Below, in pieces: positions 6,401 to 53,468 of a DNA stretch of 64,000 nt. The notes under the pieces were generated by a model. The model ran no database searches, was not told where the DNA came from, and saw only the letters and a program-made list of their open reading frames with translations. Position 1 is the first letter of the stretch. The number at the start of each line of letters is the position of its first letter. The position numbers were made by a program, and so were the translations under genes. The DNA lies in the NCBI GenBank assembly GCA_029953675.1, contig JAMWBK010000006.1, positions 1,550,001-1,614,000 on the forward strand. Direction: 5' to 3'. The stretch comes from Rhodosorus marinus CCMP1338. Taxonomy: Eukaryota; Plantae; Rhodophyta.

Positions 6401-7799
6401 CGTCCATTAGAAACGAATAAAAAAAAAATTGCAAGTGACCCCTCCCACCCCCCACCAAAAAATAAGACCAAGCAGATGAAGAACAAAAAATTAAAAGCAG
6501 CCAAGCGATGCTCTCCTTATCTTCAAGGCCCAAAGATAACCCGGAAGTAACCCAACCTCCCCCCCCCCCCACACACCCCAACCCCTATCCAACCCGCATC
6601 ATCATCCTCATCGTCACCCCACCGGAAGCGGATCAAAACCCTAGTCAATGTAAAGATATCTTCAAAACACCCATTTTCCCATTTTCCGGACACGTACATT
6701 TTTTGCGACACTTTTTTGTGTTTTAAAATAAATTAGCGGCTTTCAATTTTTCGTCATATATTGAACTGTTTCTAATTTTTCTTATTTCATGATATTCCTT
6801 AGAGTGGCAGAATATTAAACCCGAGACGATTTTCTCGGGGTCCTTGGGAACGGACCGGAAAAGTGGAGTACACAAAGTCCCTCCGCCTGTGGCTAGGGCG
6901 ATTGCAGGTGAGAATGATGCCCCGGATTTCGCAGCGGGGTGGTGGGACCTGGTGGTAGCTGATTTGGCTGCTCTTTGGAGTGAACTTGTCGATCTTTCTG
7001 TGCGGTGTTCCGAGACGGACAATGTACCTTCCTACGTCCGATCGGCGTCTTGGTGTTGCAGTTTGCTCAGTGCGGCGATTGAAAGAGTGAAAGCACGCTG
7101 AAGTGATGATGTATTCTAGGTCTCGCGAGTCGACGTTGTCGTATCCGTTTGTGCCACTCATTAGCCAGTGCTTTGGTTTAGTCGATAGTGCAGGTTCTCG
7201 CTGACTTCGTGGCCTTTTTCGTAGCCGCCAGTTCGTCTTCAAAGCCTCTTAAAGGTGATGCCGTTGAATCTCTGGCGTTATAACGCTGCTTTTTGTTGAA
7301 CGTGCGTCATCAGCGTCTGTTTTCGTCGTGGAGATGTGTTTATATTCTCGTTTCTGTACATTTATTACCAAAACAGTAGTTTTTCGCTATCATATATATC
7401 CGTACGTGTAATGGCTAATTATTACTTTATTTTGAAAAGCATGTAAACGTTTATTGGTGTTTTTTGGAACGGACTTTTATGGCTCATCTTCTATGTACAT
7501 TTATCGGTCTTTTTATTTTATTATTTATCATCCGGGCGTGGTTGATCTGCGTACGTATAACATTAATTTATTATCATAATTTGCGAGTCGTTTCGGACGA
7601 ATAACTAAATATGGAAGTGAATAATTAAAAAAATCCCGAAGTTGCTGATTTCGAAATCGTTACAAAGCAAATTATTTTTAGCGGTCGCTTTTTTTAAAGG
7701 AAATGAAAGCGGGATTGTTACCTGTGTTGATTTTTCATATTTGTTTTGAGCATTGGCCGCCGTAGGGCCGTTTTCGAAGGATTAGTTGCAGATTGGCGA

Positions 7800-8705: not shown

Positions 8706-11340
8706 AGCTGTTGCAACCCTTTCTCAAAAATTCCGCTCACGCCAGTTTCAACTAGACCAAAAAACGAAAGTAAACCTCACACCCCTCTCCGTTCCCCCAC
8801 CCAGCAAGTCATTAGCTCGACTCCTCTGCAGTACACAGCCTTATACCCTCGTTTGCCACAGGCCGCACCTAGACGGTGCATTCAATGCTGAACATAACAT
8901 ATATAGAGTTTACGACTCATGGGCTCTCAGTCTCCAACAAAGCGCCTGAGACAGAATCCTCAGCCTCAACAGGAGCGGAGAGAAAAGACATTTGGAAACA
9001 GACCCTGAGACTGGAACAGGAAAACTCTCCTATTTATCTTCGAAAAACAGAATACCCGTTTCCACACCTCGCGCTCTAATCAAACTTTGATAGGAAATTC
9101 TACTTTTTTGGCCGCTTTTTTTCCCCTGACGGCAGTAAGAAACAGATTAGCAAAAAACGATTTGGGGCTGGATCTGGCTTTGTTTTTTTTGGAGGGGTCC
9201 CGCCCGCCCGAAAAGCCCGAATGACTGATAGAGTGTATGTGCGAACGAGCTGATCACGGACAGATTAAGACGTATTAAACCAAATCTAATATCATATCTC
9301 GTAAATATCTCTTTATTTGGAACTTTTGGAGGATACAGTTGTGTAAAATTTTCTTATCTAGATTCCCACACTGCTAGAGATATTTTAGGTGGTTGCCGTT
9401 TTGGCTACTTTCTGATTTTGCTGCTGAGCTTTCAGAGGAGATGGATGTATATGTATTTCTAAAATTTTATCATCAGGATCTGCTATTTCCAAGTGAAGAA
9501 AATACAGGTTTTCTTCGTGTTTCAGATATATATTTTTTAGGTGGTTGCCTTTTTTGGTTTTTCTTTTGCTTGGTTTCTTCTTACAGCTATAGCGCATCTG
9601 CAGGTGCTAAGTACATATATGTATTTCTATAATATTATCATTAATAATATTGTTTGGGGGAGGAAAAAGAGACAGAATGCCAAAAGTCCCTTTTTATTGG
9701 ATAAGTGCCATGATGGATTCTCCAATGGCAACCTACTAATCGGGATCATTTATTTTTCCGCGGATTCCTGTATCCCAGTAATTTTATTCAATTTATTGGT
9801 GTTTGCGAAAAACAGGTTTCGATTTGGGAGACAAGGGGGTGGGGGGGAGGATGGATTCTGACACAATCCCGCGGTTTACAATCTTTTTTATGTCTTACGG
9901 GTACGCACTTTTCGGAATGGTCAGTCCGACTTTAGGGTCTCACGTAAGAATCTTTGAAACTTTTAAAGTCGGCGGAGTATATTGGCAAATGACGACGTGA
10001 GGTTCGCTTCTTCTTCTTGAACAAGAAAACTATTGCTATTTGAAGATCTGCATGCCCCACCCCCCAAAATGAGAAGCAAGAAGAATGTTTAAGAAATGTA
10101 CGTAAAACTGTAACTAACCAAAAAACTTGTTCTATTTTGGGAGGAGACGCACTAAGCATGGCAGCAGCGAGGAGTGGGAAACTTAGTATTTTGGACCTAT
10201 TTCCTAAATGTAGAGATGGTGGCTTTTTAGCGCGTTCACTCGCCTCTCTCATTGAAAGTTTATATGATTTGGGGATAAAACCTAGCTGTTCTTTGAGCAT
10301 TGCGGTTTTTCCTCTTTTAGGTTCTATGTAATCGTTTTTTGGTATTTTTAGGCGTGTACGACCTGCTAGATGCTCTTTTTCTGTCAATGTTCCTCGCGCC
10401 TTCGCTCAGCTTATTGAAGGCTGAGCTCCGGAGGCATTGGGCTGATGGATAAAAGCGAGCTGGCGTGGCCTATCTCCCAAACGGAAAAGGTTCCCTTGCA
10501 GTTCTGAGTGCGGACAAAGTCAGGCTCGAGCGAGACCGGACAACCAGCGACTGCGAGAATAACGGGCGCTGGAAACATTTTTTTTTGTGGAAAATTGGGC
10601 TCTTGAGCGTCTGGTTACGACGGATATTGGAAGCTGAGTTCCAAAACTCCGGCCTCTTCGATGGAGATCCACTTGCGAGGTGACCTGGGGAATCGATTTC
10701 TGATACGTTCGTGCGCAAACGAGATTGAGCTTATGTCCGGCGTGTTCTTGGAGGGAGTTGTTTCATACGATTTTACACCAACAAATAGCTCACACGAGCT
10801 TATCAGCATCATTTATCGTCCAACCCGACCTGGGCTACTCTGCCATCCCCCGCTCTGGTGTGACCTCAGCTGGAAGAAGGCTATTTCAGATCAGGAGAGT
10901 ATGTACACGACTGATGCGGGAAGCCTGCGATACGAGTACCAAAACTCCGTTCTGCCCCTGTTTTTGCTCTCGAAAAGACCCATGCAGTCCAAGAAGCTAC
11001 TACTCAAAACGGGGCAGATTAGATCGTCTGAAAGACTGCTCGTGCGCCCAACCAAGAATGCAAGCAACTCCCGGGGAGAACAGCCCATCGCTCACTTCAT
11101 GCGGAGTGGTTACACATCCTTCTTCAGAGAGCTCCTTTTTTTTCCATGCATTCAAACACCAGCCACCCTTTTTCAACCTCACGAACACCCAGGAGAGATC
11201 TTGTACACAGGGAAGGTCCCAAGTACCCGGCGCTCCGCCTTTCCACTTGTCGTTCTCCAGCGAAACGCCCTCACCACAGATCGAGGCCCTGGCCATCGGG
11301 CTCCCACCAAAAAGGAACTGAATCCCGTGACGCTAAAGGA

Positions 11341-11776
11341 GGGAGCGGGGGCGGGGGGGGTGGTAGGAAGCAACGAGTCCAAAGGTTCTCAGCCGAAATC
11401 GATCTGCGTGGAAACGGAAATCAATACACATGCGATTCACCCCTTCAGACTTACAGCCCCTCCCTGACAGGATCTACCCGACACGTATAGGATGGAGTGA
11501 CGGAATTTATCGGCTCCTGATTGACACTGCCTTGAATCAACCCAAAAACTTTTGTGTCCCTGGCTTGCTTACGAATGTGTATATTCCCACACGCTCTAGA
11601 GTTGTGTAAAGTAGGGAGCCGGGGCGCGGGGGGGGATGGGGAGGATAGGAAGCAACGAGTCCAGAAAGGTTCTCAACCGAAATCGATCTGCGTTGAAACG
11701 GAAATCAATACACATGTGATTGACCCGCCTAAGACTTACAGCCCCTCCCTGACAAGATCTACTCGGGACCTATAGC
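11341..11776 (+). repeat. Imperfect direct duplication of a ~150-bp segment (11341-11490 vs about 11614-11776)
   Basis: Both copies read GGGAGC..GGGGG..TAGGAAGCAACGAGTCC..AAGGTTCTCA.CCGAAATCGATCTGCGT.GAAACGGAAATCAATACACATG..AGACTTACAGCCCCTCCCTGACA.GATCTAC. Confidence 0.9.
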
Positions 11777-11860
11777 CCCCCTCCCTGACAAAATCTACCC
11801 GGGACGTATAGCCCCTCCCTGACAAGATCTATCCAGGACGTACAGCCCCGCCCTGACAGG
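11737..11860 (+). repeat. 34-36-bp minisatellite, about 3.6 copies
   Basis: Units at 11737-11770, 11771-11806, 11807-11840 and a partial unit at 11841-11860; consensus TA(C/T)AGCCCCTCCCTGACAAGATCTA(C/T)CC(G/A)GGAC(C/G). Confidence 0.92.
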
Positions 11861-15303: not shown

Positions 15304-17714
15304 AGATTTACAAAAAGCGAAGCGCTACCTTCATTGATCGGTCGACCAGAGACAAAGGAGTAACTAACAAACTGCTTTATCCGATCCACCTTCTCCAAGC
15401 GTTGTATGATAGTCCACATGAAATCCAACGCATCCTTTCCAGCAAGTGCAAAAGTATGCTTAAGTTTCCAAGAAATCCTTTAAACGGGGGGGGGTTTGTG
15501 AACAGTGGGCCGGTCACAAAGATCGTCTGACCATCGGGTTGAACGTTACTCGGCACGTTTGCCTTCTCCACGCGAGGTGTAGTGATCTCCATCGCTTCAA
15601 ACAAAAGCTCTCAGGCGAACCAGGGGTCGTGTTCAGACTTCCTACTCGTTTCTTTCGTCGACGGATCATGAGAAGCCGGAGGTAGGATTCTTCGGAGGTC
15701 ATTTGAAACCGTGCTCGGTAGGTTGGTGAGCCCATTGGGTTGAACTTTCCCATTCGCTGAGAGACTAATCGAAACACTCATCATCAATAGCTTGGAAATT
15801 TGGTTGGCACAGTCAAGCACTTCTTGATATTCGCTTAAATAGATTGATACTTCAGCAGAAGTGAGGCCTGAGACGGACTCTGTGGTCGTTGCAGGCCTTC
15901 TGGGTCATGCCCGTCCGTCAATTCCGAAAGGTAGCTATTGATATCATCCTATTGTTCGTATGCGATTCATAAAATCGATGTGAATTCTTCGAGGCTCAAC
16001 AGTAGCAGAACTTTAATCTGTACAAGTGTATACGGTCGGAGGGTAGAAGGGACAACAGCAACTCCTTCACCGAAATTTGTCATTATCCGTTAACGACCTC
16101 GAGAGCAATACACTTCAAATTCTGCGAGGGATTCCTGCTTAGTTCACAAGTAGCCTGTGGCTGTTCGGTCAAACCCTACGACCTCGTCATCACGAAGCTC
16201 GAAAGCCATCCTCTTCGGCCCCAATCAATACTGACGCGCTCATGTCCCAAAGCGTCCCATTTATGTCCCGAGGGCGGTGACGTCTCTCTTACTATATTAT
16301 GGCTCAGTGTCTTTTAAAATATCTCATCTAACATGTATCTAATAAAATTAAAAACAACAATAAGGCACATATTGATTCAAAAATCATGCATGGGAATGTC
16401 CAGAAAATGAATTTTGGGGCATAAATCTCTCCTCGATGTTTAAAAAAAGGAAGAAAACGGGTCCCTCAAATCAATATAAAACAAAATAGAATTGTTTTCA
16501 CTCGTGGGAGAAACCTAAGATACGAACTCCACTGGAGGCTCACCACCAATACCACCAACGAGCAAACTGTGCCCGCCGTCCACATTCCAAATAAAACGAA
16601 AAACAAATCAAAAACCGGAGCAACACTCCGCCCTCTTAACACTGCAATGGAGGGCAGATCTACACACAACCCCAATACCCCTATAGAACGCCCCAAAAGT
16701 GAACAGTACTATGATTAGTATTAAAAAATAAGAGGGTAAACTGAAACGGCGAGAAATTGAATCGGTGTCAGAACGTACTCCCCCCCCCCCCTTCGTAGGC
16801 TTGCCAGAAAGGTAGATTCTGTGGTCCCTATAATGAATATATTTTATTTAAAGCAAATCTCTTAGATGCGATCGGTTTTCCACAAATTTCCACCACCGTC
16901 CACTCGGAATGAGTAGGGAAATAGTACCTTTTTAAAAAAAAATACAGTAAACGAGGAGGTTGGGATCGTGCGTTTTGCAACAGTGCACCCCCTCGAGGAA
17001 TACCCACCAAGAATTACCCTAGGTTCTCGGCATATGTTAGTACCCCCTCATATTATTTTCCAAACGTTAAAATAAGGAAATTAAATTGGTATATTCAGAA
17101 AAATAGAACGGTGAAATTGGACCCCTATGAACTTTTCTGATCAGTCCGAGTGTATTCACACCCCTGCCGGATATTTCATGTTAAGAACTTTCTTCGAATT
17201 CCACAATATTCCTTTCCCCTCCAAAACAATGAATAATCATCCTCCGATTTCTGCATGTGAGCCCTTGATTCGTCGAAAAGTTTGTCCAATACCGAATTAA
17301 ATAGTCGTAAAAAGATTCAGCGGAAATTTCTCGAATTTCAGACGCGCGTCATTCATTTATTGTGTTTTTATTTACAATGAATTTATATAAATTTATTGGA
17401 TATACTCTCTGTGTTGATACATGATTCGTAATGTTCATTCTTAGTCTAACATAATTGGATAATTGGTACCGTAAATGATAATACACAGCCATATTCCTTT
17501 TATTTTTTTTTATCGCTGTTGTTGACCTGGTGCAAGGAGGTACTTCATACCGATGCGCTGAAGCCTTGACTAGACTGGGAGAATGGAGAGGGACGGGGGA
17601 GGAAAGGAGCACGGTATAGGATCTTGTGAAGGAGGTGTAGTGATGTTAGTGAGGAGCGTATAAGAGAAAAGGTATGATCAACAAGTTTTCATCTTAGAAA
17701 AAAATTCGCAAATA

Positions 17715-21143: not shown

Positions 21144-21454
21144 TCACGCAACATCGTAGCCGAAACCCATTAGGGAAAGGGTTCATGACTCCACTGTAGA
21201 CTCCTTGTTTCCTCTTCATCAACTCCACAACGGGCTATCCAGTGAAAGCGCCAACAGTAACAGAAAAATGTGCCAGTTGTGATATCTGAAGCTACCAGAT
21301 ATCACACAACATCGTAGCCGAAACCCATTAGTGAAGGGGTTCATGGCTCCACTGTATGCTCCTTGTTTCCTCTTCATCAACTCCACAACGGGTTATCCAG
21401 TGAAAGCGCCCAGAGTAACAGAAAAAAGTGCCAGTTGTGATATCTGAAGCTACC
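21144..21454. repeat. 158-bp tandem duplication (2 copies, roughly 90% identical by eye)
   Basis: TCAC(G/A)CAACATCGTAGCCGAAACCCATTAG... begins at 21144 and 21302; ...GATATCTGAAGCTACC ends at 21296 and 21454. Confidence 0.95.
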
Positions 21455-22657: not shown

Positions 22658-24346
22658 TCATGGCGTCCAGTAGTACTTCAATTCTATTTTGCCACGATTT
22701 GTCTTTGCTTTCCTTCTCCCATTCCCTTGTTTCTCTAGTATATACTCTCTCTCCAAGCTATTGTACTGAGGGTCTGGGGTGATTCCCCCAATCAACTCAC
22801 CAATAAAATCGTTTTGACTCGTGGCGTCATAGTCGTAGACCTTCACCTGCAGGGACAGGGGTAGACCGGCTTCTGCTTGCGAAAGTGGAAATCTGAATTC
22901 CTCCGACCAAATTGGTTTTCTGGACTTTTGGATAAATTTCGTACATCGATAGTGCTTCCCGTTAAGCAAAAGGACCACAAAAGGATCGGCCTTGCCATTG
23001 AAACCCGGGTCCATCTTTGGCAAGTCGGTTGCGGACTTCACGAAAACACAGAAGACCCTTCCTTGCGGGTAGAGGTTGTACAAAGCGGATGCCATATGCG
23101 TCAACGACATGCTCCCAGAACTGCCATTGGCCTGCACTTGCGAAAATGACGCGCTCCCGGGGGTTGCTCCCGGAGGGGCACCCGGCGGTGTACCATATAT
23201 AGGAGGGCTCGCCCGGTATTGCGAGGGGCTTGGCAAGACTCGGATTGGGAACTTCACGGAAAGCAGGTTCGATCTCGCGCCTATCAGGCCTCCTGGTAGA
23301 TGGAAGATGAGGTTAACGAAGTGTTTCACCTCCATTTTCTCCTTGTCTCCGTGCTTCAAGAATGTAGAGGGAGGCTCCATGACACTTGGTAGCCTGATCC
23401 CAAAGCTTCTATCAACAGTCGTTTTGTTCATAACCCCAAGTTCGTAAAGAATGAGGTCTGAAGACCCCCCTACTCTTGTAGGTTTTGTACGGTCCACGCT
23501 GAATGTTCTCCGGTCCAAGTTTTGCACGGTGTACTCTATCTCCTCCGTTATCCTCATATCAGCAAGATTTAGTTGCTTATTTAACTGGTTGTTAATAGTC
23601 GTCTCCACAACCACAGTGTCCCCTGCGAAGTATCCAACAGCAGAAGGTCTCGCCTTTACGTGTATCTTTCCAGCCGTGTCTGACACTTCCTTCCACCCAA
23701 GCTCTGTTCCTATAGAGCCGGCGCCCAAGGTGCTCATTTCGGAAATGGTCAACGGGCCCCGAAGGATCTCGATTGGACGCATCCTGCTCTTGAACATGTA
23801 CTGGTAATTCTCAAACTTCACCTTCACCCTGATCGTGTAGGTGACTTCAAACCTCTGTCTCTTTCCCCCGCTGTCAACGAAAGCACGATCAACGGGCTCC
23901 ATGGTGTTGGGGAGATTTGGAGGTATGGGAAGGGTTATCGGGAGGTCTATTCTATGCATTCCCGTGGAGTCCACCTGTCCGTTCCCGTACGGAGCACCAG
24001 CGACGGGGAAGAGCGTATACCTAAACGAATGCTGGAACCATTTCAGACGCTCGGTGACCGTCTTCGGCGAAGCACCAAGTCCGAAAGGGTCTCCAGACGT
24101 CTCACCGCCTACAATCTTGGAAATGTGCCTCAGCATCTTGGATTTCAACTTCACTTTGACTAAAGCTCCCAGCGGTGGTAATTCCGGACTCCTCAATACT
24201 ACTTTTCCATGTACTACCATTCCCGACATAATACCGGGTATCCTTTCACGCAGTTGCATACCATCCTCGAGATTATCCAGCCCGCTTATCAGCAGCTGCA
24301 AATCTGCCATTGGATAGTACCGACTGGAATTCTTGCTCCCAGTCAT
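22658..24346 (-). CDS. Arrestin-fold protein with PPxY motif and C-terminal C2 domain (562 aa, single exon)
   Basis: N-terminal arrestin-like strands (..PITLPIPPNLPNTME..EVTYTIRVKVKF; GYFAGDTVVVETTINNQLNKQL; PPSTF..MEVKHFVNLIF..VKFPIRVL), then SPPIY. C2 domain VFVKSATDLPKMDPGFNGKADPFV..LQVKVYDYDATSQNDFIG. Confidence 0.85.
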   Translation of the reverse strand: MTGSKNSSRYYPMADLQLLISGLDNLEDGMQLRERIPGIMSGMVVHGKVVLRSPELPPLGALVKVKLKSKMLRHISKIVGGETSGDPFGLGASPKTVTERLKWFQHSFRYTLFPVAGAPYGNGQVDSTGMHRIDLPITLPIPPNLPNTMEPVDRAFVDSGGKRQRFEVTYTIRVKVKFENYQYMFKSRMRPIEILRGPLTISEMSTLGAGSIGTELGWKEVSDTAGKIHVKARPSAVGYFAGDTVVVETTINNQLNKQLNLADMRITEEIEYTVQNLDRRTFSVDRTKPTRVGGSSDLILYELGVMNKTTVDRSFGIRLPSVMEPPSTFLKHGDKEKMEVKHFVNLIFHLPGGLIGARSNLLSVKFPIRVLPSPSQYRASPPIYGTPPGAPPGATPGSASFSQVQANGSSGSMSLTHMASALYNLYPQGRVFCVFVKSATDLPKMDPGFNGKADPFVVLLLNGKHYRCTKFIQKSRKPIWSEEFRFPLSQAEAGLPLSLQVKVYDYDATSQNDFIGELIGGITPDPQYNSLEREYILEKQGNGRRKAKTNRGKIELKYYWTP

Positions 24347-26841
24347 TGCAAAAAAAGGGCAAAAATTGCACCAAAAAACCTGCTCCTACTCACCAAACCC
24401 CTCAGACTCTTCCTGCGCAAAGCGCTGCTACTCACTCAACATACAACGTTTGAAAACCCACAAACTCCTGATCTGTTGAGCCAAACTCCATCGCACAAGT
24501 TTTCTTTTCCTCTCAACTACTCCATCAACGACATGAAAAACACCAGCAAAAAGCTCGATCTTGCTCAGGTCCAAATTCCACTCAAGCTCACCCTCCCCTC
24601 CCCTCCGCCCAACCCCATCCCCATCCCCATCCCCATCCAATCTCACAATCGCACTTAACTCCCAGTTCTCCAATACAACCAGCTCCCCCCCCCCTGAAAC
24701 ACCTCCAGAGGAGATAGCTTTAATCTGAAAGAAAGCCCAGGAAGTATCCACCAACCTTTTGCTGGAAGGGTGAGCCGTGGAAAATGGGGAGGTAGGTAGC
24801 AGGGCCACTATTACGACCCCAAAATAAACCAACAAAAAGAAAAAGAGAAGCATTTCACATCAGCTCACCAGATTCGCAACAAATTTCCAGTCCCCCCAAC
24901 CCCCTCTCCCTTGCCCCTGCCAAACAACCTGGGTTCCTGAAAAACTTAAACTGAGAAAATAACACCTATGTTTTACACCCACAATTCCCTATCCTAATAC
25001 ACATATCATGAATAGAACAAATAAAATATCTGAATGAGATTTTATGTTGTCTTATATCTAAGAACCTAGACATTATCTATAGGAAACTGGACAGTCCCCC
25101 CTCACCCAGTTCTGGGTCTCAACCGCGGTCTGATGTGAATATTGATAATTTTTCGATGACAATAGCAACCTGTTGAAGAAGAGTAAAAAGCCCAAAATAT
25201 CAATCTACCAAAAAAACAACAAGGATTGCCTGTTCAAATATAATAATGTTGTTATTGCCTAGCGCATAGATTTGATTATGGACGAGCAGCTATTTATACA
25301 TAGATTTTTCTGCAGAGTTTAGCTTTTGATCTTTTTTGTCAAGGTTCTCGTTTTTCCGTTGAAATACGATGTCTGATAGTTTGACGAAGATTGATTGAAT
25401 TTCTAAGACAAAATTGGATTTTCTGGATGGGATGGCAGAGCATTTGGCCATATGAACTGTATGCTTGCGTGGTGAATTGTGTAGATTTGGGAGGTGGGGG
25501 TTGGGGGGAAGAAATCCACTTGTTTGTGAACCACGTTTTCCGGGGTTTTTGGTATGCACCAGTTTTATTCTTTTTCTTTGCGTATAAATCTGAAGAGGGA
25601 TTTAGAGGGGGGGAGAGGTAGCTGGACTTTCCTAGGATATCGTAAATTGCCAGTGGGTTGGCAAGTTCCTAAATTTTGATGAAGTCCATCGTATTTTATC
25701 ACTCCGTTTCATAATATTTCGTGCTTAATCGTAATTGTTTTACATCTTTTCGGTGAGCCGAGTTTTTCTGCTGCATGTTCATGGACATGCCACCTGAGAT
25801 TCTCTTGTACTCATCCCGTTTGGTGGTTATCTACGCAGGATAGAAACGAATCGACCTCCCCCTCCCGCCGAACAACCTCCCACCTCCGGTAAGAGCTTGA
25901 ACTAAAAAGAGACGAATCGGGCTTCGGATTCCTGCGGCGCTCGCGTCGTAATCTGCCATCGGGGAATCAAATGTCGAATCGATGTTCTCCGTATCTCAGT
26001 ATCTCAAGTCATAAACCGGTGGAGTTTTCGTACAGCTAGGCTTTTTGGAGAACCCCTTTATTACGGTTGAGCTGAAGGAACTTTTAAAAATGTACGTATG
26101 ACTTGGGTAAGTTGGTTGTTGCCATCGTCTTTTCTCGCTTCGGTTGGGTTTTCTCCTGTGCGCAGATTTTTGACGTAGATAGACTCTTCACGTGCTTGGA
26201 ATGGGGTATGTTGATTGGAAACCAGGGTTCACGTTTGTTGCACATGCGGACAACCGTTGCAACACAAGACGAAGGCTGTTGCGGGTCAGTCTGAGTCATT
26301 CTGGCCACATACCCTGTACGACAGACGCCTGAGAAGCACTGAACTTGCGGTCTGTTATGGACGCATCTATTCCAGAGCACGTAAGTACCGACAGCGATAC
26401 CTGCGAAATTCTCAAAGAGTTTCAGTGTACAACTACCAACAGAAACTTACAAGCCAGAAAATTTGTGTTTGCCTCACTTCAGCACCAACCTGATGGGGGC
26501 TTTCACCTTTCCAGTAGACCGCAGTCCACAAAAGTTGGAACTGTTCAGACAACAGAGTTGAAAACTGGACCGTAGTCCTCTCACGTTTGCGGAACTTTAG
26601 AACCCTGCAATCGTACAAGAGCTCTCCTCCATGCTCGCGAATCCCAGATGACCGGATGATATAGTGCAGATGGTCATATAGAACATGACCAAGGCGCGAG
26701 GGCGCTCACTCGCCTCCCTAACACTAAGCGCGAGGCCGCTTAGTGTTCTTCTACAGGAAAACCGAGCTTCGATTGGGAACTCCAGCACAGTGCTCACAAT
26801 GACACTGTGCATTGACAAGAGCACAGGAAAAGAAGCACTAG

Positions 26842-26877
26842 GCTTGACTCTTGTAGGAGCCCCTACAAGAGTCAAGC
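26842..26877. repeat. Perfect 16-bp hairpin with a 4-nt loop
   Basis: GCTTGACTCTTGTAGG-AGCC-CCTACAAGAGTCAAGC. Confidence 0.9.
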
Positions 26878-27082
26878 GATGGACTCACATGGGTGGTGAG
26901 CTCATGGCGAGTCTTTCGTAATTGAGGACTAGAACAGTGACCAACGGCAACTGGTAATGACTCACAAAGCACTCAGACAAACGTTCGGATGATCAAGTCG
27001 CAGTTGCAAGATTTCAGTGATCACCAACTACCCCTTCATGAATCAGCTCATGAACGGAAACAAAGGAACCAAAACAAGCCTA

Positions 27083-27345
27083 ACATTTTTAAACAATTAA
27101 GCGATCCTCCTTCTCTGCGACAATATTCACTTCGGCATCATCCATATACCCCTTAGCAAGTGGGACCCGGGTCCCGATTAAGCACCTCTCCCATCAGTGA
27201 TTAAGCACCTCCCAGTGGGACCCCGGTCCCGAGTAAGCACCTCTCCCGTCAACGATTAAGCACCTCCCACTTGCTAAGGGGTATATGGATGATGCCGAAG
27301 TGAATATTGTCGCGGAGGAGGATCGCTTAATTGTTTTTAAAATGT
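27083..27345. mobile_element. Foldback/MITE-like element: ~80-bp inverted arms around two 55-bp direct repeats
   Basis: Arms at 27083-27165 and 27265-27345, with a perfect 49-bp core (27117-27165 vs 27265-27313). Internal direct repeats at 27160-27214 and 27215-27269. The structure is directly visible; the transposon interpretation is inference. Confidence 0.75.
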
Positions 27346-28478
27346 CAAGATCCTCCCCGAAAGTTCATTTGGATTCGCTCGGACAAACAAGCTGTGGCCG
27401 GGTACAAGAAAATTCCTCTCTTGTCACCTTTAGGCGTGTCGATTGGGGATGCCAAGTTTGTCCTTGGAGACCAGCATAAATCGCCCCAAAACCCACAGCC
27501 TCCCCACTTGACCTAGAATATTATCTGCCCTGCTCCTCGACAAGCGCTGATAGTGATTTCAGGGATTCTACACGCTTCCCATCCTAGCCTAGCTGCAATT
27601 TCCCTTTGATCTGAGAACTATCCCTTTGCTATTGCAAGAGCTACCCACGAACCTCCACGAACAACTCAACCAACCCGCTAGATAATCTCCAAGCAGCCTT
27701 TGTTCAATCGAAAGCCTCCGCGTCCTCTCGCTGACACCCGAAAAACAGTACAAAAAAAATCTCGAAAAGATATTTTGAAATCAAACACCAAAATCGAAAA
27801 ATAATATCTTCCTGGGCCAATAAAATTCGAGGATTTCTACTAAACGCCTTCATCAACCGCGTCACGAAAAGCCGCCACCCGCACCTAGTACACGAGAACA
27901 AAGCCTTCCAAAAACTATTTTTAGAAATAAAAAAGAGGTTTCCTGATCGGTTTACATAATTACTAAGGGGTAGGCTAGGGAGTGACGTATTTTACCTTGT
28001 TTCCCGGGATGCGGAGGGAGACGGACTTTTGAATTTCTTTCCAAGGCCTTGGGCGTAAATTTGTTCAAGCTGTATTATTTTGTATTAAGATATAAATAAT
28101 TGTCTTTCAGGAATTGTGGCCGTTGGTTTTGATGGGTAGATTTTTTTGCATGTTTAGATTCCGCCTCCAAGTTCGTGTCTTGTAAGATATTTGTTTTGCC
28201 TCTCGTCGGTCACACATATACAGGAGAGGTGTGCGCAGGTGGTTCGGTTTGTGAGGAAGGTTGCAGGTTGGCAGGGTAAGCTTGAGAGCCTTGAAAGTAC
28301 GAACGAGGTAAGTGGGAGGAGGGAGAGAGTGAACCAGTTCAAAATTTGCGTACGAGGGAGTACGGGCTGTTCGCACATTTGCTTCGGGGTTTGTGGAAAT
28401 ACCCCTGGCTGTTGAGGGTTGTTTTTCGGGAGTTCTGGAGGAGAGGGTTGGCAAGGAGGTTGGGAGGTGAATACAAGG

Positions 28479-29408
28479 ATGTATAGAGCGGAAAACGGCG
28501 CGGGCTATTGTAAGATGCTTCTTCAATTGAGGGGTTTCCTCTTTCGTCTTGTGTTTCGTTGTATCTGACGTTGTGGGTGTTTGGTACATCTTTTTTTTTT
28601 TTTTTTTTTAGATTCGCCGGCTCCTGTAGCTGCCTACACTCAAGAGTACTCTCCGCAGGTGGGAGATGCGTCGTCTGTTAGAGTGCGGAAGCCATATCAT
28701 AGTAGTCGAAGACGCCAGGCGTGGACAGAGGAAGAACACAGGCTGTTTTTGGAGGCGATCGACTTCCATAAGCGGGATTGGAAGAAGATTCAGGAACATA
28801 TTGCTACCAAAGATGTGCTGCAGATCAGGTCACATGCCCAGAAGCATTTCAGTAAGGTAGAGAGGAACAAAACGGGTGAATACGTACCTCCGGCAAGGCC
28901 GAAGAAGAAAGCTTCTCACCCGTACCCAAGGAGACAGAGTACGGAACAGGGCGGCGCTTCCAGAGCTGGCGTGAGTGGGTCCCCGGCCGTTTCGCCAATA
29001 ATGTCACCGGAGATGGAGGCCCAGTCAACACCTCTAGCCAATCAAATGTTGTGGAGCCCCTCACGACAGCAAAGCCTTATGCACTATAGAAGTCAGATGG
29101 AGTCGTTGCGAATGCAGGGCTACTATGAGTCGCCAACTCCTACGGGGCCGCCACACTTTGTGGCATCACCTCCGCAATGGCAGAGCCCTTGCCCTGGTCA
29201 TTACTCCTATGGGCCTCAACCGCGGTATATTGTCCACAATCCAATGCCTGACACAGCGCGGAACAGAGCGATTCGGTTTCAGAAGCTGAAGTTTAAGAGG
29301 AGACGTGTGGAGGAGCTTCTGAAACTGGAAGGTGAATCTGATACGAGGTCGGTGGATATTCTTACCGGAAGCACAGTGTCGAAGGAGTCGTCGGACGTCT
29401 TCGATTGA
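28479..29408 (+). CDS. Single-MYB SHAQK-type transcription factor, REVEILLE/CCA1-like (LCL/RVE8-like motif)
   Basis: RQAWTEEEHRLFLEAI..RDWKKIQEHIATKDVLQIRSHAQKHFSK followed by VPPARPKKKASHPYPRR. Inferred first exon 28479-28509 (MYRAENGAGY) and intron 28510-28610 join in frame. Confidence 0.92.
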
Positions 29409-29749
29409 ATTGTTTGGGACCGCGCGGAGCGTAAGCGATTGATTTCCGTATTATTGAAGTTGCCAAAAGCACACGGAGGCGACATCGACCTTTTAAGCGG
29501 TAAAAAGGTCGACAACGTGTTTTTTTTTAATTTGTTTGATAGGAACTTGTTATTGCATGTTTGATTCGAGGCTCCGAGTGCTTCGGAATAAGTGCTTATT
29601 CGTCACGCCGAGGTTTCTCCGAGTCACGCCTATTTTTTTAACTTTTTTTTGTTGATCTTAAATGTCCCTTAATACATAAACGATAAAACCATGACCTCTG
29701 GGATGGCAGTTGTAGTCAATCTGGTTACCCTTCGTTCCTCATACGCGTG

Positions 29750-30250
29750 CTGAGATGAAGCGGAGAATTTTCGATGCCTCATGAATTCTGTTATAAGTCT
29801 GTCTCGCGTGCCACACTGGTGACGGACCCCAGCGTAGCAAGCTTGAGAATCCCGAATGACTCGATCACAAGCAGGACTGGACGATGTGTCATGCGTAGCG
29901 CATTGAGTCGTTCGGGTTTCTTGATGGCATGAGCTCCTTGTCTCAAAAACTGCCTCCGTGATCGCCAGACTGCACTTTCTCTGACGTGGCTCTCCGCTTC
30001 ATGTTACGGCGAGTTGACGCCGCATAGTTGTTTGAAGGGCGTAACACCCGTCTTCGGTAGCACAGTGCTCTCAGAGTAGTTCGTCGCTGACAAACGCACA
30101 TGTCTTGGTGACGGACCGATTCTCCAGTGTAGCTTTGTTCGTACGCACCGTCATCATGACTCTTTCACCACCCGCATCTGTCCCCTAGACGCTGGTTGCA
30201 AACGGGCCACACCAGTGGGACATGACTTACCGCACATGGCACTGGTTATA
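29750..30250 (-). mobile_element. Possible decayed LTR-retrotransposon integrase C-terminal fragment
   Basis: Stop-interrupted translation ATNYSESTVLPKTGVTPFKQLCGVNSP resembles the integrase motif AYN..HSTTG.TPFELLYG..P. Confidence 0.3.
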
Positions 30251-31599
30251 CCTCCAAAGTACCGGGCCTAGGGCTGGGCAACCTGTCTACTTTTTTTTCT
30301 CAGACGCAGCGGTCCTTTGCCTGCTCCTCCCTCACCCTTTCACCCGATGCACGAGCTTGATCGCCTCTTCTTCTGTCCGGCACCTGCTCTATTCTTAGTT
30401 CTCTGTTTTTTTTTGAACCTCATCTGCGGGAGGGTGAGTTGCTCAGTTTTCGCAAGCACGGAATCAACTGCATGACAAAGAAAAACATCCGTCCATTTCT
30501 GACGGTCCACTTTGTGACTGGGACGCTGTGAAATGTTGAACTGCAACATAACTTCGATCGCTTCCTGGTCATAGCCTGTAGAACTCCGAGGCCTTTTCAT
30601 GGGTACGCGGCCTCAGATGTCTGATCAACAGCACGTGAACCCCTCGCATCGGGATCAGTTCAAGAGCCTTTCTAGAGGATCCGATGACTGCACTAGACCA
30701 GCACAAGAGCGTTCAATCTTCCACCCCTACGAGAATTAACTGCCTGGGCGTTAGACGAAGGAGCCCCCCGGGACCTCCCACCAACATACCCACGAGTGCA
30801 TCTCGTCTATAGTTCCCGGTGGACTCTCCGAGCTGGATGTGTTGCCCCGTTTCCAGAATTCACCATTTTCCCATTCTAACTCCCCGAGACCTGAGCTCCA
30901 TCAAAAATTCATTTTGGCAATGAACGAAAGATTCCGCCCCTACTGCGACAAATACCGCACGCGCGTGCGTGTTTGCATACGAGGTCGCAACCCACTCCAC
31001 GCAGATTCAAACCAAGCGATAGCGCAGATGACGATAAACCCAATCCGTGCGAATTCTCATTCTGCGCAACAGGGGATGACAAAAAAAAAAAAAAGGGAAG
31101 AAAAATATCTGTGTTCACCACAAAGGAAATTCACGTTGACATTCTTGCTCAATGTGACCATCAATCGAACTCCCTATCTCCGCACTCCAGCAAACAAGTT
31201 GGGCCGCTTTTCACCACAAACAGGAGAAAAACGGCAAAAACATACTGTGAAAATTATCAACATGATGAATTCCTTCAAAATTCAATACAGAAAAATTCGC
31301 GAAAGCAAATATCATAAGAAACATTTGCTTTGAGCACCAGTTGCTAATCATCTCACGGAAAATCATATTTTACGAAAGTAAATTATTTAGTACTGATGTC
31401 TCCGGTTTCTTAAAATCTTAACCAGTTTTCGAATGTGAGGGAGCTTTTTACATCTGAACCCATGTGGTAGTCTATCGGTAGTCTTTGTGGCGCTGTTCGA
31501 CGAGGCTAACACTATAATTGATCAGGGTGATGCTGGAGAGTGCCCATCCTTCCTTAACCTCTTTCACACGGAACGCGATTCTTTTTTCAAGTCTGAATG

Positions 31600-43698: not shown

Positions 43699-44483
43699 TT
43701 TTCCTCAGCTGGGGGTAAAAACCAACACTATATGAAATCTGAAGTTCTCTTTCCTAACCCACTCCCCCTCGTCAAATCCTTTGCTACAGGCATAAATAAA
43801 CCCCAGTTGAAACCCAGATCGCTAAGCTCACAACAAAATTTCACTGAAGAGAAAGAAATCACAAAAAAGCAAAAAAAAAGTGTCAACTTCCCCAGACCAG
43901 CAGACACCACCAGCGCCAAGATTCTTAAAAACCTCTCATTACGGCTCTTACTTAACAGCCACCATACCTCTCAAGAAAACAAAAACCCAAAACCCAACAA
44001 CGGCCGCCCCAAAGATCTCGCTCCCCAAAACTACACAATTCGCAAAACCTTCCCGGGTCCCCCCCAAGGCCCTCGCCCCCGCCGTGCGCTCCGATCTTCC
44101 TCAAATCCTTCAAAACCAACTCCGTTCCTCACAAACAACAACAAAACATTCTCAACATTCCTATCCACAGATCCTCTCCCTCCCTCCCTCTCTCTCTCAC
44201 ACTAAAACCCTATCTATCCATCTACTTATACACTATCCCTCCCCTGCACACTCATAACTTATTCATCACAAAAGAAAACTAAAACCTACTCAATCCAATC
44301 CATACCCCCTTCAAATCTCACCTAACATTAAAAAAACATCCTCTCCCTTCCCCCTTCCTCCTCCATTATACCCCCTCCCCACCCAACCCCCCCCCCCCCT
44401 CCCACACAACCCTCCCTCCCTCATCCTCTCCCACTCCTCTCCCACCCCCTCCACAGAATGAACCAAAACAAACAAAGAGACAG

Positions 44484-48685: not shown

Positions 48686-50744
48686 CTAAGCCACGTCAGT
48701 CTCCGCAATCGTCAGTCCCGTAGTAGCCGCGCTGATATCCTCATTTAGGTTATCGTCGCCTACTCCCTCAGTGATCATAGTGCTATCACCAGCGACGGCG
48801 ATTTCCTCCATCTTGCTCGTGCCGCCTAGGTCTTTCGGAAAGTCAGTTGGTGGAGCAACTGCATTTCCAGCGATGATGTCCTTGAAAGAGGGTCTGTTCA
48901 GGTCCATTGCCAAGGGGGCGTCAGCAGACTTCATTTCCCCTTCAGGAAAATCGCCGTCAACAACTACCTGCGACTTGCGCGCAATAGGTGGTTTCTTCGC
49001 TCCAGATTTTTCAGCAGTATCCTAAATCCAACGAATGAAATACCAACAATTAGACCACAAACCGAACTGAGTAGTGTTCACCGGCGACTTTGTCGGGGGG
49101 ACTCTCACCTTTTTCTCTTCACTTTCTGCCGGAGGAAGTGCTGTTCTGTAGTATTCCTGTTTCTCTTTGACCGCCTGAAAAGTGCTTGGGACCTCGCCCC
49201 TGGTAGACGGGGCCTTAATCCCTAGCTTCCCGAACGCCGTGTAGGCCTCCATTGAATGCTTGGGAATCTTCTTATCTGCGTCCGAAGCAGACCTTGAACC
49301 CTTCCCGCGCTTGCCCTTCTTACCCTTGCTCAGTGCTGCGTAACCATCGTCCGCCTCAACCAGTCCAGCGCTCTTACCGATCGCTTCCGCCCCGCTGTTA
49401 TCACTGATTTCTCTGGCCACAGGCTTTTCCGGAGTCTCAGTCTCCGCAGAGGTTTCCGCAGTCTCCTTCTCGTCTTCAATAATCAATGACGGGTCTAAGG
49501 CCTGCAGATACAGCAAGAGAGACCGACACATCGCCTTTTGTCCCTCATACGGATCTGTAGGCTCCAGCTCAGCGAGCTCCGCCTCGTACTTCAACCGTTC
49601 CCCTTCCTTCCTAGCTTTGAAAGCTTCAAGCTTCTGCTGCTTCTTGTATCTTTCGAACTCGAAGTACTTCTCCTCAGTCTCCTTGTATTCCTTGAACCGC
49701 CTATCATGGTCAGCAATAATACGATCAATCTCGTCCTTTGCGTCCTTCTTCTTTTGCTTCTCCGTTTCATAATCTACGTGTTGGATCTAGTCGAGAAGAT
49801 TCACGGGCTACCGCTATCAGCAAAAGTAAGATAGTGCGAAGCTCGCTATCGTGCGTTCCAGAACAATTAAAAATGTCTAAGCTTCTTACCGGCGTCCTGA
49901 GCTCGTCGAAAACGGACTTTTGAGCTTCCTTGATCTGCTCGATAGCTTTCTTCTGTGCATCATACTTGGCTTGGATGGCGTTGATTTCGGCGTCTAGAGC
50001 TTTTCGCTGCTTCTCAAGTTCTTCTCTCTCTTTCTTCCTATCCTCCTTGGAAGCTTTGAACTCTTCCCTTTGCTGCTCGATCTTGCCCATTATCTCCAAA
50101 CCACTGTGCTTCAGATAATTAATCTCCCCTGTAATTGACTTCTCTTCCTTCGTCGTCAGAGATTCGGTTATGTGAATGTATTCAAGCTCCTTAATTCGCT
50201 TCTCCACATCTGCTACGGTCGTGCAATATTTCAGAGCACGCGGTAAATCCTTCAAACTATTCTTACTAGTTCCATCGTAGTCCTGTTGCTTCAGAGCTCG
50301 GATCTGGTCAACAATCGCCTTCTTGGCCTCGATCTTTTCACGCATGAGATGATAATACTCATCCTTTGCCTTACTCAGACCCTCGACCTCCAGCCTGGCA
50401 TCTCTCTTCGCCATCTTGATCTTGTCACTACCATCCCTGAGCTTTGACAGGTTTTCACTCGCTTGATTTCGTATCTCCTTTTGTACATTTATAAGCTCAT
50501 CCCGTTCCTCCCTCGAGGGCCTTGGAATCCTCTTTACCGGCTTAGGCGGTTCTTTGACCGTCTCCACTACCTTGTCCTCAACCTTGTCCTCAACCTTGTC
50601 CTCAACCTTGTCCTCAACCTTGTCCTCAACCTTCTCCTCGACTTTTTCCTCCACTTCCGCTCCCTCCTCTTTGCTCACTTCCTCAACCATTTCCAGTCCG
50701 TTCTCTGTAAGCTGCACGCTCACCTCTTCGGCTTCCTCCGCCAT
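48686..50744 (-). CDS. BFR1 / proton pump-interactor (PPI1)-like coiled-coil protein, multi-exon
   Basis: Long coiled coil with TTVADVEKRIKELEYIHITESLTTKEEKSITGEI, DPYEGQKAMCRSLLLYL and KHSMEAYTAFGKLGIKAPST..AVKEKQEYY, as in the BFR1/PPI family. Start MAEEAEEV at 50744. Confidence 0.7.
50571..50654 (-). repeat. Coding 12-bp tandem repeat (KVED x5 perfect plus 2 degenerate units)
   Basis: CTTGTCCTCAAC repeated five times at 50571-50630, then CTTCTCCTCGAC and TTTTTCCTCCAC. Confidence 0.95.
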
Positions 50745-52610
50745 GTCCAAGACTCTCTCTCCGAACACGAGCTTCCCAAAGCAACTGTTTTTAGATCTTG
50801 ATCAAGACTGCTCCAACTCACGACATACACAGCGCATCAAAACTTAGGAGGAAAAACTTGCAAGCGCTGCAAAAAAAACAAAAACAAAAAAGATCTTCCT
50901 CTCCTCCAAAGACTCCTCCTTCACACACCCACATGCAACCCCCAACCCACAGCACAGCTAGACCATTACCTGTCCCGTCTCACTCTTACGCACCCTGACA
51001 GCCCTTATCTTTGCAACCCGTCTCTCACGCCCAAACAAGAAATATCCAAATCCGCTATGCTTGTCACCCCCTACCCCGCAAAACCCCCTGCACCCCCCTT
51101 TTGCAGTAGGTTACCCCCTTGCTCTTCTTGAGTTCCAGTACCCAGCGCTCCCAAAAACATCATAATCTTATTCATAAGAGGATATTTTGGACTGTCGTAT
51201 TCTCGATTTACCAGGGGTATGGATTAACTTTAAGTTATGTCTACGCAATCGGTTCCCACCCCCCTCTTATTTTTTTGTTTTCCTATTCGACGTAAAACTC
51301 CGAAAAGAGAAATTAATCAGAACGCCTGCACTGTACTAAAAAATTGTTAATCTTGGCAATCCGGGGGGGGTTTGACACGCAGTCTTAACCGGGTTTCGGG
51401 TGGAGGATAGAAAATTGGTAGAATTTTCAAGTCGATGAGAGGCGATGACATGTAGCTTTTAGGATACGAAGTATCTTGTTTTGGAAAATTAGACCTTTTT
51501 ATGAGAATATCCTTTCTTGAGCGTCAAAGTAGCCCTGGTGGCAGAAACGCCAAAAAGAAACCGCCTGACTGAGAAAGAAACTAAGAAGTGATCACCTTCG
51601 CCGCCCCACCCCCACCCCCCTGGTCTTTCCACTCTCAAAATGCTCTTCCCGACTAGAACCCCCTTAGATCAGTATTCTATATATATATATACTTTTCTAG
51701 AAACCGTTGCGTGTGCCTCGCTTTGCACCATTCCCTATCAAATGCATTCGTATTGAGGGGGTGGTTCAGTGGATGGTTTCAATTTACTCATCCTGCAAGG
51801 CGTCGGACAAAAACGGGCTAAGAAGGAGAAAGACGTATCCACGCAGCAGCCTGTTTTTGAGCACCAAAAATATAACTGAAAGACCCAAAATTTGGCGTAC
51901 TGACGGTGTCTGCTGCTAGTGCATATCGTATTTACGTTTTAGAGCTTTCGTCTCCTACGACGATCCCTTAATATTCTGGAAAATAAAAAAACACTTTCCA
52001 TTTCCATATCCGAAATTGGGAGAGAAATCGGTTTGGATAATGGATATTGTTTTTTTTGAAGTATTCTTTGCCGACACGACCAGATGTGCTGAAAAAGGGC
52101 TCTACCTTCTAACAAGGGCTAGAAGGGTTCAACCTGAATCCAATCCCAACTCTAGCAAGGACCCAGTGCGAACAAAAACAAAAAACTAAAACTACTAAAA
52201 GGAACAAAAATTCTTGTTTTCCGATTCTTTCAGTATTTGCGTACCCCGCCCGTATTTTTCTATCCGATTATTGGCATCCATTGTAACCCCTCGCTGCGCT
52301 CGTCAGAAACTCTGTGGCACGTTTTTGTTTTGGGACGTTGTAGCGACTATTAGGGAACGGGCTTGATTCGCGTTTACTGAGATTTTTTGGGAAGGCCCCC
52401 ACTCTACGGATTGGGAAATTTCATTGTCCGTGATAGTCACCCCTCTGTCCTTAAGATCAACTCTTTTGTTGGGACTCCTGCAGTAGCCTCGCACTCACTC
52501 TTCTTTAGCAGGCATCTGATTCAAAATGGTCTCGAGTATGTTCTGGAGGGCTTTTTAAACTTGAAATTATGCTCAGATTGAAAAGCTTGCCTGATTAGAG
52601 TGGGATCAAA

Positions 52611-53468
52611 ATGTCAACCCTCGCCCTAGAGCAAATGCGGAGCGATCTACTGCCGCGAATCGTCGTTGTATTGCCCTTATTGCTGTTACTGCTGTTGCCG
52701 AGATATCTTCTCCGAGGTTGGAGAACAAGACCTTCACGAGCTTTCAAGCTCGTGCATGAGATAGCATATGTTTTTGCGCCTACTGCCCACGATGTGACTC
52801 TAGTAGTACAAGACGAGCAGGCTTTGAAGATGCTAGTCCAGCGAACAAAAAATCTTCGTGAGTTTGACTTTTTCCGAGCTAGATTAAGAGGAGACCACTC
52901 CTTATATACTTAGGGGTCCTATGGATGTCTTAGCTTAAGCAGATTAGTTTTTGCGTATATTGGTATTGCCAAAGGTATATGCCCATGGCATCCCACCATC
53001 CCGTGGCACGTCTTTGCGTCTTACGCTTGAACTGGCAAAATCAATGGGGACACCAAACCTCCACGTGAAATGCCGCATGGTCGTTTGCCAAAGGTATATG
53101 CCCATGGCATCCCACTATCCAGTGGCACGTCTTTGCGTCTTACCCTTGAACTGGCCAAATCAATGGGGACACAAACCCTCGAAGTGAAGTGCCGCATGTA
53201 CTCTAGGTTTGGCGGTCCCTCCACATCCGCGGAGGTTGAATCTCCCGTGGGAATCCAACTTCGACGGTACTGGGCTGCGTCATCGGCAAACGACAGAACA
53301 CGACATGAAGGCCTTATGTGCCTGATGTTTTGCAAGATGGAGTTCAACCAAGTGTGGAATCTCCAGCATCGATTTGGGTTCGAATGTATATTCTGCTGTA
53401 CCTCAAAAAGGCGAATATGGCCGGTGGATCAGACCGATTTTGTTCCCCATTTTACTGATGCAGAATGA
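52611..53468 (+). pseudogene. Hypothetical coding-like region broken by a frameshifting internal duplication
   Basis: ORFs 52611..52913 (hydrophobic IVVVLPLLLLLLL), 52951..53187 and 53070..53468. The latter two share LPKVYAHGIP.S.GTSLRLTLELAKSMGT because of a 119-bp duplication. No family recognised. Confidence 0.35.
52966..53198. repeat. 119-bp tandem duplication (2 copies)
   Basis: TTGCCAAAGGTATATGCCCATGGCATCCCAC... begins at 52966 and 53085; ..GCCGCATG ends at 53079 and 53198. Confidence 0.95.

Follow-up and report, generated by a model that had tools for sequence, protein, structure and literature searches.

A 263-bp non-coding inverted repeat in nuclear intergenic DNA of Rhodosorus marinus CCMP1338: possibly a local templated inverted duplication with a later-duplicated spacer

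Introduction

The nuclear intergenic DNA of the red alga Rhodosorus marinus CCMP1338 contains, at positions 27083-27345 of the stretch analyzed here, a non-coding inverted repeat with a spacer, 263 bp in length. The spacer is itself built of tandem units, palindromes and short repeated motifs, and a structure of this kind raises the question of what it is, of how it came about and of whether it is mobile, viral or functional. An earlier note on this DNA had proposed three readings: a non-autonomous foldback element or miniature inverted-repeat transposable element (MITE), a hairpin-RNA locus, or what is left of a viral or rolling-circle element, either its replication origin or its terminal hairpin. 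We report here a computational analysis of the element, of its flanking sequences and of its surroundings. The term window is used for the whole stretch of DNA that was analyzed, which is 64 kb long.

Results

Structure of the element

The two arms, the 49-bp stretch over which they match perfectly, the two 55-bp units between them, the palindrome with its one-mismatch copy and the four short motifs that the earlier note had described are all present, in the positions given there; the features of the element and of its surroundings are collected in Table 1. When the left arm is globally aligned with the reverse complement of the right arm, the differences amount to 2 substitutions, one 1-nt indel and one 3-nt indel, the arms being about 95% alike. 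The perfect match covers their inner 49 nt (27117-27165 / 27265-27313). The repeat finder reports the arms as two segments, one of 58 nt that is 97% complementary (27108-27165 / 27265-27322) and one of 26 nt that is 92% complementary (27086-27111 / 27316-27341), and the global alignment merges both into a single 83/81-nt pair. At the two outer edges, 27083 and 27345, complementarity ends abruptly. The arms represent 63% of the length of the element and are A+T-rich (41-42% G+C), whereas the core enclosed by them has a G+C content of 60%. No other inverted repeat in the window reaches 30 nt with more than 80% complementarity.

No internal tandem repeat was found in the arms, and the only tandem repeats of the element, of 55 bp and of about 23 bp, sit between them. 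The two 55-bp units are 91% identical (5/55 differences) according to the repeat finder, and Tandem Repeats Finder agrees. Each unit contains two TAAGCACCT motifs; written as (T/G)TAAGCACCTC, the motif occurs four times, with starts at 27178, 27201, 27233 and 27256. Copies 1 and 2 (27178-27188 and 27201-27211) are carried by the sub-repeat pair of unit 1. The symmetry center of the whole element (27215) is also the center of the 11-nt palindrome.

Table 1. Coordinates of the inverted repeat, of its parts and of other features of the 64-kb window.
Feature	Position	Strand	Remarks
Left arm	27083-27165		83 nt, 41% G+C; pairs with 27265-27345
Right arm	27265-27345		81 nt, 42% G+C; pairs with 27083-27165
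Tandem unit 1 of spacer	27159-27213	+	55 bp; overlaps the inner end of the left arm by its first 7 nt
Tandem unit 2 of spacer	27214-27268	+	55 bp; overlaps the inner end of the right arm by its last 4 nt
Perfect 14-nt palindrome GGGACCCGGGTCCC	27162-27175		In unit 1; self-match on the opposite strand
One-mismatch copy of the 14-nt palindrome, GGGACCCCGGTCCC	27217-27230		In unit 2
11-nt palindrome TCCCAGTGGGA	27210-27220		At the junction of tandem units 1 and 2
Sub-repeat pair in unit 1, GATTAAGCACCTCTCCCATCAGTG then GATTAAGCACCTCCCAGTG	27176-27221	+	About 23 bp duplicated in tandem, as read from the sequence
Sub-repeat pair in unit 2	27231-27270	+	Carries motif copies 3 and 4 (27233-27243, 27256-27266)
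Neighboring perfect palindrome	26720-26747		11-bp stem, 6-nt loop; outside the element
Neighboring perfect palindrome	26842-26877		16-bp stem, 4-nt loop
Five perfect short palindromes of the window	727-754, 21278-21306, 26720-26747, 26842-26877, 29485-29512		Stems 10-16 bp, loops 2-8 nt
Other two-copy tandem duplications, intergenic	21144-21454, 52966-53198, about 11347-11850		Of 158 bp, 119 bp and about 284 bp, respectively
Arrestin_C + C2 domain gene, 562 aa	22658-24346	-	Start codon at 24346; transcribed away from the element
REVEILLE-like single-Myb gene	mRNA about 28255-29773	+	Start codon 28479, intron 28510-28611, stop 29408
AAAATATCT sites	9378-9386, 16316-16324, 25023-25031, 27768-27776 (-), 31102-31110		

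The four motifs and the two 14-nt palindromes are in register with the repeats of 55 bp and of about 23 bp. The earlier note had taken the motifs for iteron-like sites; as independent sites they do not hold, since they follow from nested repeats, a duplication of about 23 bp being contained in that of 55 bp. Motifs and palindromes are copies by descent, and not four independently maintained sites. Because the motifs derive in this way from nested duplication, their excess over chance has no functional weight. No ORF longer than 64 aa crosses the element, and the longest ones touching it (55-64 aa) have neither a family match nor a homologue, which bears out the view that no ORF explains the structure.

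The tandem units differ from each other at 5/55 positions and the arms at 2/79, a difference that is not significant (P = 0.12). If taken at face value, the higher divergence of the units could fit constraint or selection on the termini, or homogenization of the stem, the difference itself being not significant.

Flanking sequences and copy number

A second copy or fragment of the element was searched for in the 64-kb window by seeded repeat finding, with 30-mers allowing 3 mismatches, with blastn-short and with nhmmer --max, and none was found. The flanks were compared at three boundary registers, and at none of them is the element bordered by a perfect direct repeat between 2 and 10 bp long; the closest agreements are 2/3 (TAA/TCA, or CTA/CAA in the neighboring register), 5/8 and 5/10. 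The pair TAA/TCA had been suggested to be perhaps a decayed 3-bp target-site duplication; it agrees at two of the three positions. A single trial would produce such agreement by chance with a frequency of about 16%, and the comparison was made at three registers. This match has no evidential value.

These results bear on the reading of the element as a single copy of a non-autonomous cut-and-paste transposon, that is, a MITE with unusually long termini and with tandem sub-repeats inside, inserted upstream of the Myb gene. Sharp-ended terminal inverted repeats, small size, lack of coding capacity, A+T-rich arms around a 60% G+C core and an intergenic position 910 bp upstream of an mRNA start are all in keeping with a MITE, as are the 3-bp flanks in so far as they agree at two positions. 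The genome moreover contains 6757 unclassified short repeats, which make up 4% of it and have an average length of about 186 bp (PMC10250338). On the other hand, with arms that are still about 95% alike, a target-site duplication of 8-10 bp should remain recognizable, and there is no perfect one of 2-10 bp. The hAT elements make 8-bp duplications, and such a duplication is absent here. The arms, at 63% of the element, are far longer than usual MITE termini, the window holds no other copy or fragment, and there is no transposase among its 50 longest ORFs. Annotated DNA transposons represent just 0.03% of the genome in the RepeatMasker table, where they are of hAT type only, with 35 fragments (PMC10250338). 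A MITE origin is the main alternative to a local duplication, and we consider it rather unlikely. Of the non-autonomous foldback element or MITE that had been proposed, the inverted termini and the small size stand, and the target-site duplication of 2-10 bp and the second copy within 64 kb are missing. The earlier note had itself held that a single copy with no target-site duplication or empty site and with no small RNAs would speak against an active element; no such duplication and no second copy in 64 kb were found, which argues against activity.

Genomic context

By exact protein look-up the window falls on contig JAMWBK010000006.1 of the nuclear assembly described in PMC10250338, in the same orientation as the contig. 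The element lies in a spacer of 4.1 kb in which no gene is called. The genes on the two sides, an arrestin_C/C2 gene and a REVEILLE-like Myb gene, are ordinary ones and are transcribed away from each other. The right end of the element is located 910 bp upstream of the mapped 5′ end of the Myb mRNA and thus outside that mRNA, which was mapped by means of the JGI transcripts L008 and L009 of a related strain and of a 274-aa MMETSP orthologue (P0001, 90% identical). The public record under-annotates the Myb gene, giving it a 135-aa product (29001-29408), while the transcripts and the orthologue support two exons. L008 and L009 are Rhodosorus transcript contigs of JGI sample 3300016967 that include no intergenic DNA and show 80-86% nucleotide identity to this genome; it follows that public "R. 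marinus" strains are quite divergent from CCMP1338.

The 9-mer AAAATATCT, the plant "evening element" bound by REVEILLE/CCA1-type Mybs, is found five times in the window, compared with 0.58 occurrences expected, and none of 100 shuffles reaches five. One copy precedes the start of the REVEILLE-like mRNA by about 480 bp. Spacers also contain, close to where genes start, low-complexity tracts rich in C (24595-24638, 6559-6590 and 44371-44442), with a repeated CCCCAT at 24607-24638. A 12-bp coding repeat of about 7 copies (50545-50664, minus strand) corresponds to a repeated EDKV run in a coiled-coil-like ORF (49767-50768).

Pfam gave no match for the 10 neighboring ORFs between 24.4 and 28.6 kb. 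For the 50 longest ORFs in the window, the domains are those of ordinary nuclear genes, including PPR, PUF, SfsA, RED, arrestin_C plus C2, Myb and a phycobilisome protein. Neither in these nor in the neighboring ORFs did the Pfam search reveal a transposase, reverse transcriptase, integrase, Rep, helicase or capsid domain.

The surroundings are also relevant to whether the structure is an artefact of long-read assembly, produced for instance by a chimeric fold-back read. The assembly is based on long reads (PMC10250338), and the collections searched contain no independent assembly of the locus, the neighbor genes being present only in the NCBI assembly. Nevertheless, the structure is small, it is located in the interior of a 2.47-Mb contig and the flanking genes are intact. 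Fold-back chimeras give exact palindromes of read scale, whereas here the arms differ by substitutions and indels and the units differ at 5 positions. An artefact appears to us highly improbable.

Predicted folding and database searches

As single-stranded DNA, the element is predicted to fold at -99.4 kcal/mol, compared with -27.8 ± 4.1 kcal/mol for shuffled sequences (z = -17.4; 0 of 200 shuffles are as good). As RNA, the predicted energy is -156.5 kcal/mol (z = -16.6), a value that no shuffle equals, and the predicted stem is near-perfect, about 80 bp long, with a loop of about 100 nt. Each of the tandem units can close on a 5-6-bp stem, which results in a loosely T- or Y-like shape; the predicted minimum-energy folds of DNA and RNA do not show a clean T shape. 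In single-stranded form, or as RNA if transcribed, the element would form a duplex of about 80 bp, and this structural activity is the sole one that can be predicted.

Several collections were then searched for related sequences. Exact 22-24-mers of the core and of the arms are absent from IMG/VR viral contigs, JGI metagenomes and prokaryote genomes, and blastn of the whole element against plasmid and phage collections gave no match. A loose motif-pair pattern had five matches in IMG/VR, which proved to be 15-bp coding repeat arrays unrelated to the element. The six-frame translation of 27060-27480 (with X at stops) had no match at E ≤ 1 among 5.8 billion proteins. Hence the arms do not derive from a known coding sequence by inverted copying, no Rep-like remnant is hidden in this region, and among the ORFs called on public contigs or transcripts there is none that spans a homologue. 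Two ORFs run into the arms, and neither is on record according to an exact protein look-up. Rfam 15 gave no match at gathering score in the whole window and none at E ≤ 1 in 24300-28700. A search of the literature on red-algal MITEs or on RNAi in Rhodosorus returned nothing specific.

It had been proposed that the locus could encode a hairpin RNA, and the fold qualifies for this. A transcript of the element would give the near-perfect duplex predicted above, which may be diced to small RNAs, and a gene of this sort would be compatible with either a transposon or a local origin of the sequence. Its site in an otherwise gene-free 4.1-kb spacer suits the proposal as well. The remaining evidence points in the other direction: the mapped Myb mRNA starts 910 bp downstream of the element, neither the ORFs called on public transcripts or contigs nor any Rfam family match the region, and the arms have no similarity to any gene of the window that might serve as a target. 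A hairpin-RNA gene is accordingly an unlikely candidate.

In the third proposal of the earlier note, taken here to refer to a small DNA virus or a rolling-circle element, the structure would be what remains of a replication origin or a terminal hairpin. A long stem that encloses palindromes and repeated motifs and the loosely T- or Y-like shape of the units speak in favor of this proposal. The searches leave it unsupported. Neighboring ORFs and the 50 longest ones of the window encode no Rep, capsid, transposase or reverse-transcriptase domain, nor a helicase or an integrase. Neither the six-frame protein search nor the DNA searches in viral, phage, plasmid, metagenome and prokaryote collections produced a match, and there is no second terminus in 64 kb. 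The repeated motifs, moreover, lie inside the loop as products of tandem duplication, not as independent sites beside a short stem, and a clean T shape is missing from the minimum-energy folds. An origin of this type is disfavored to the point that we regard it as exceedingly improbable.

R. marinus has the highest fraction of nuclear mitochondrial DNA (NUMT) among 14 red algae, and the constant regions of its mitochondrial minicircles contain tandem repeats and have a raised G+C content (PMC10250338). The element, with its tandem-repeat core of 60% G+C, might correspondingly be a NUMT, namely a repeat-bearing piece of a minicircle constant region rearranged to inverted form. An inverted repeat in minicircles is, however, reported only for Rufusia pilicola, according to the supplement of the same study (PMC10250338). 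The six-frame search shows no protein-level trace of organelle genes, and, since NUMTs make up little of the genome, the prior is low. We judge this explanation very unlikely.

Duplications and palindromes elsewhere in the window

Three other two-copy tandem duplications were detected in intergenic DNA of the window, with 84-94% identity between copies, like the 55-bp pair of the element. They suggest a recurrent habit of slippage or duplication. A minisatellite with a period of 34-36 bp (11733-11858) lies inside the longest of the three.

Perfect short palindromes (stem of at least 10 bp, loop of at most 12 nt) number five in the window, against about 0.35 in shuffled sequences; one of them is located in the 3′ UTR of the Myb gene. 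Two, at 26720-26747 and 26842-26877, fall within 365 bp to the left of the element, a clustering that has a probability of about 0.0015 when evaluated post hoc. The first of these is possibly part of the same palindrome-prone stretch as the element. As a deleted relic of the element it was discarded, a likeness to the arm as good as that of this palindrome being found in 7.6% of random 11-mers; for both nearby palindromes, likeness to the arm is at chance level. The excess of palindromes, together with the tandem duplications, indicates that the intergenic DNA of this region is visibly prone to slippage and to palindrome formation.

Discussion

Which process could have generated a long, near-perfect inverted repeat that is flanked by no target-site duplication and has no companion in 64 kb? 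We tentatively favor a local templated inverted duplication, the spacer of which was duplicated later. A stretch of about 80 bp would have been copied as its reverse complement beside itself by template switching during replication or repair, so that a short G+C-rich spacer came to be enclosed by a structure able to form a hairpin. This spacer would subsequently have been enlarged by two nested slippage duplications, of about 23 bp first and of 55 bp next. Such duplications would have turned one palindrome and one TAAGCACCT motif into what appears to be a "palindrome/iteron core". It is the order of these events that we infer; the anatomy, the fold energy, the absence of a target-site duplication and that of another copy in 64 kb are results of the analysis.

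That short template switches can give rise to new hairpins with spacers is well established, and Loytynoja and colleagues have reportedly worked on hairpins of this origin. Several features by which a template switch is recognized are found here: an inverted copy stands next to its source, the spacer is short, a target-site duplication is missing and the 64-kb window has just one copy. A local duplication accounts at the same time for the apparent single copy, for the missing target-site duplication, for the lack of a partner gene among the 50 longest ORFs of the window, and for the duplications and palindromes present in the same DNA. Several considerations weigh against it. In an assembly with some 31 Mb outside the window, even a family numbering up to a few hundred copies would mostly leave a stretch of 64 kb with no second member. 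MITEs typically show the sharp A+T-rich termini, the 263-bp size and the proximity to a gene that are seen here. The greater divergence of the units relative to the arms, although not significant, would fit selection on termini. Lastly, the 4% of the genome that consists of unclassified short repeats (about 186 bp) could include MITEs (PMC10250338).

We also infer that the element has no selected function. Taken jointly, the versions in which it would be a functional locus seem to us distinctly improbable: a hairpin-RNA or proto-miRNA gene of an early-branching red alga, a symmetric cis-regulatory module acting on the divergent arrestin/C2 and REVEILLE-like clock-type Myb genes, or a nuclear copy related to the maintenance region of the mitochondrial minicircles. 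The cis-regulatory version, which shares in this joint estimate, is a possibility in that palindromes and repeated motifs flanked by mirror-image arms would form a candidate module.

The element is a real and probably ordinary structural feature, a spacer-containing inverted duplication or possibly a solitary MITE, and nothing found shows it to be mobile, viral or functional. Should it be a local templated duplication, it would provide a clean example of how replication errors make long hairpins in a compact algal genome; hairpins of this kind are raw material for hairpin-RNA genes and potential fragile sites. Should it belong to a genome-wide family, that family would be the first MITE-like one described in a genome whose annotation contains hardly any DNA transposons. 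A match to a minicircle constant region would bear on how the mitochondrial minicircles of the Stylonematophyceae seed the nucleus, and the element would matter more if small RNAs map to it.

The element can be compared with several known systems, among them Rep-dependent single-stranded DNA origins and terminal hairpins of the parvovirus type. The latter are the ends of linear genomes with NS/Rep and capsid genes, a second terminus being present a few kb away. The stem, the internal palindromes and the repeated short motifs are shared with these systems. In contrast to them, the element has no Rep or capsid gene among the neighboring ORFs or the 50 longest ones of the window, and no second terminus in 64 kb. 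Rep-dependent origins lie next to a gene for an HUH Rep endonuclease and have a short stem, with a conserved nicking motif in its loop and iterons at its side; unlike in these origins, the element's motifs are placed in the loop through tandem duplication, and the stem is about 80 bp long compared with about 10 bp. Hairpin-RNA loci and young MIRNA genes that arise from inverted duplication have in common with it the long, near-perfect RNA stem and the loop of about 100 nt, as predicted by folding. Unlike in such loci, the arms match no protein-coding sequence and resemble no gene of the window that might be a target.

Foldback elements of the FB type resemble the element in that it is nearly all foldback. 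Their arms are, however, arrays of short tandem repeats in variable number, whereas the arms described here consist of unique sequence, the tandem repeats being confined to the spacer. With MITEs, whether of the Tourist and Stowaway types or the long-terminus ones derived from Mutator, the element shares a length of 263 bp, inverted termini, A+T-rich ends, the lack of an ORF and the proximity to a gene; it departs from them in having no target-site duplication and no other copy in 64 kb, in the 63% of its length taken by the arms and in belonging to a host nearly without annotated DNA transposons. With respect to template-switch inverted duplications, the arms of about 80 nt are at the long end for such events, and the spacer has been duplicated twice since. 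The inverted copy beside its source, the short spacer, the absence of a target-site duplication, the single copy in 64 kb, the intergenic location and the palindromes and duplications in its vicinity are what the element has in common with them.
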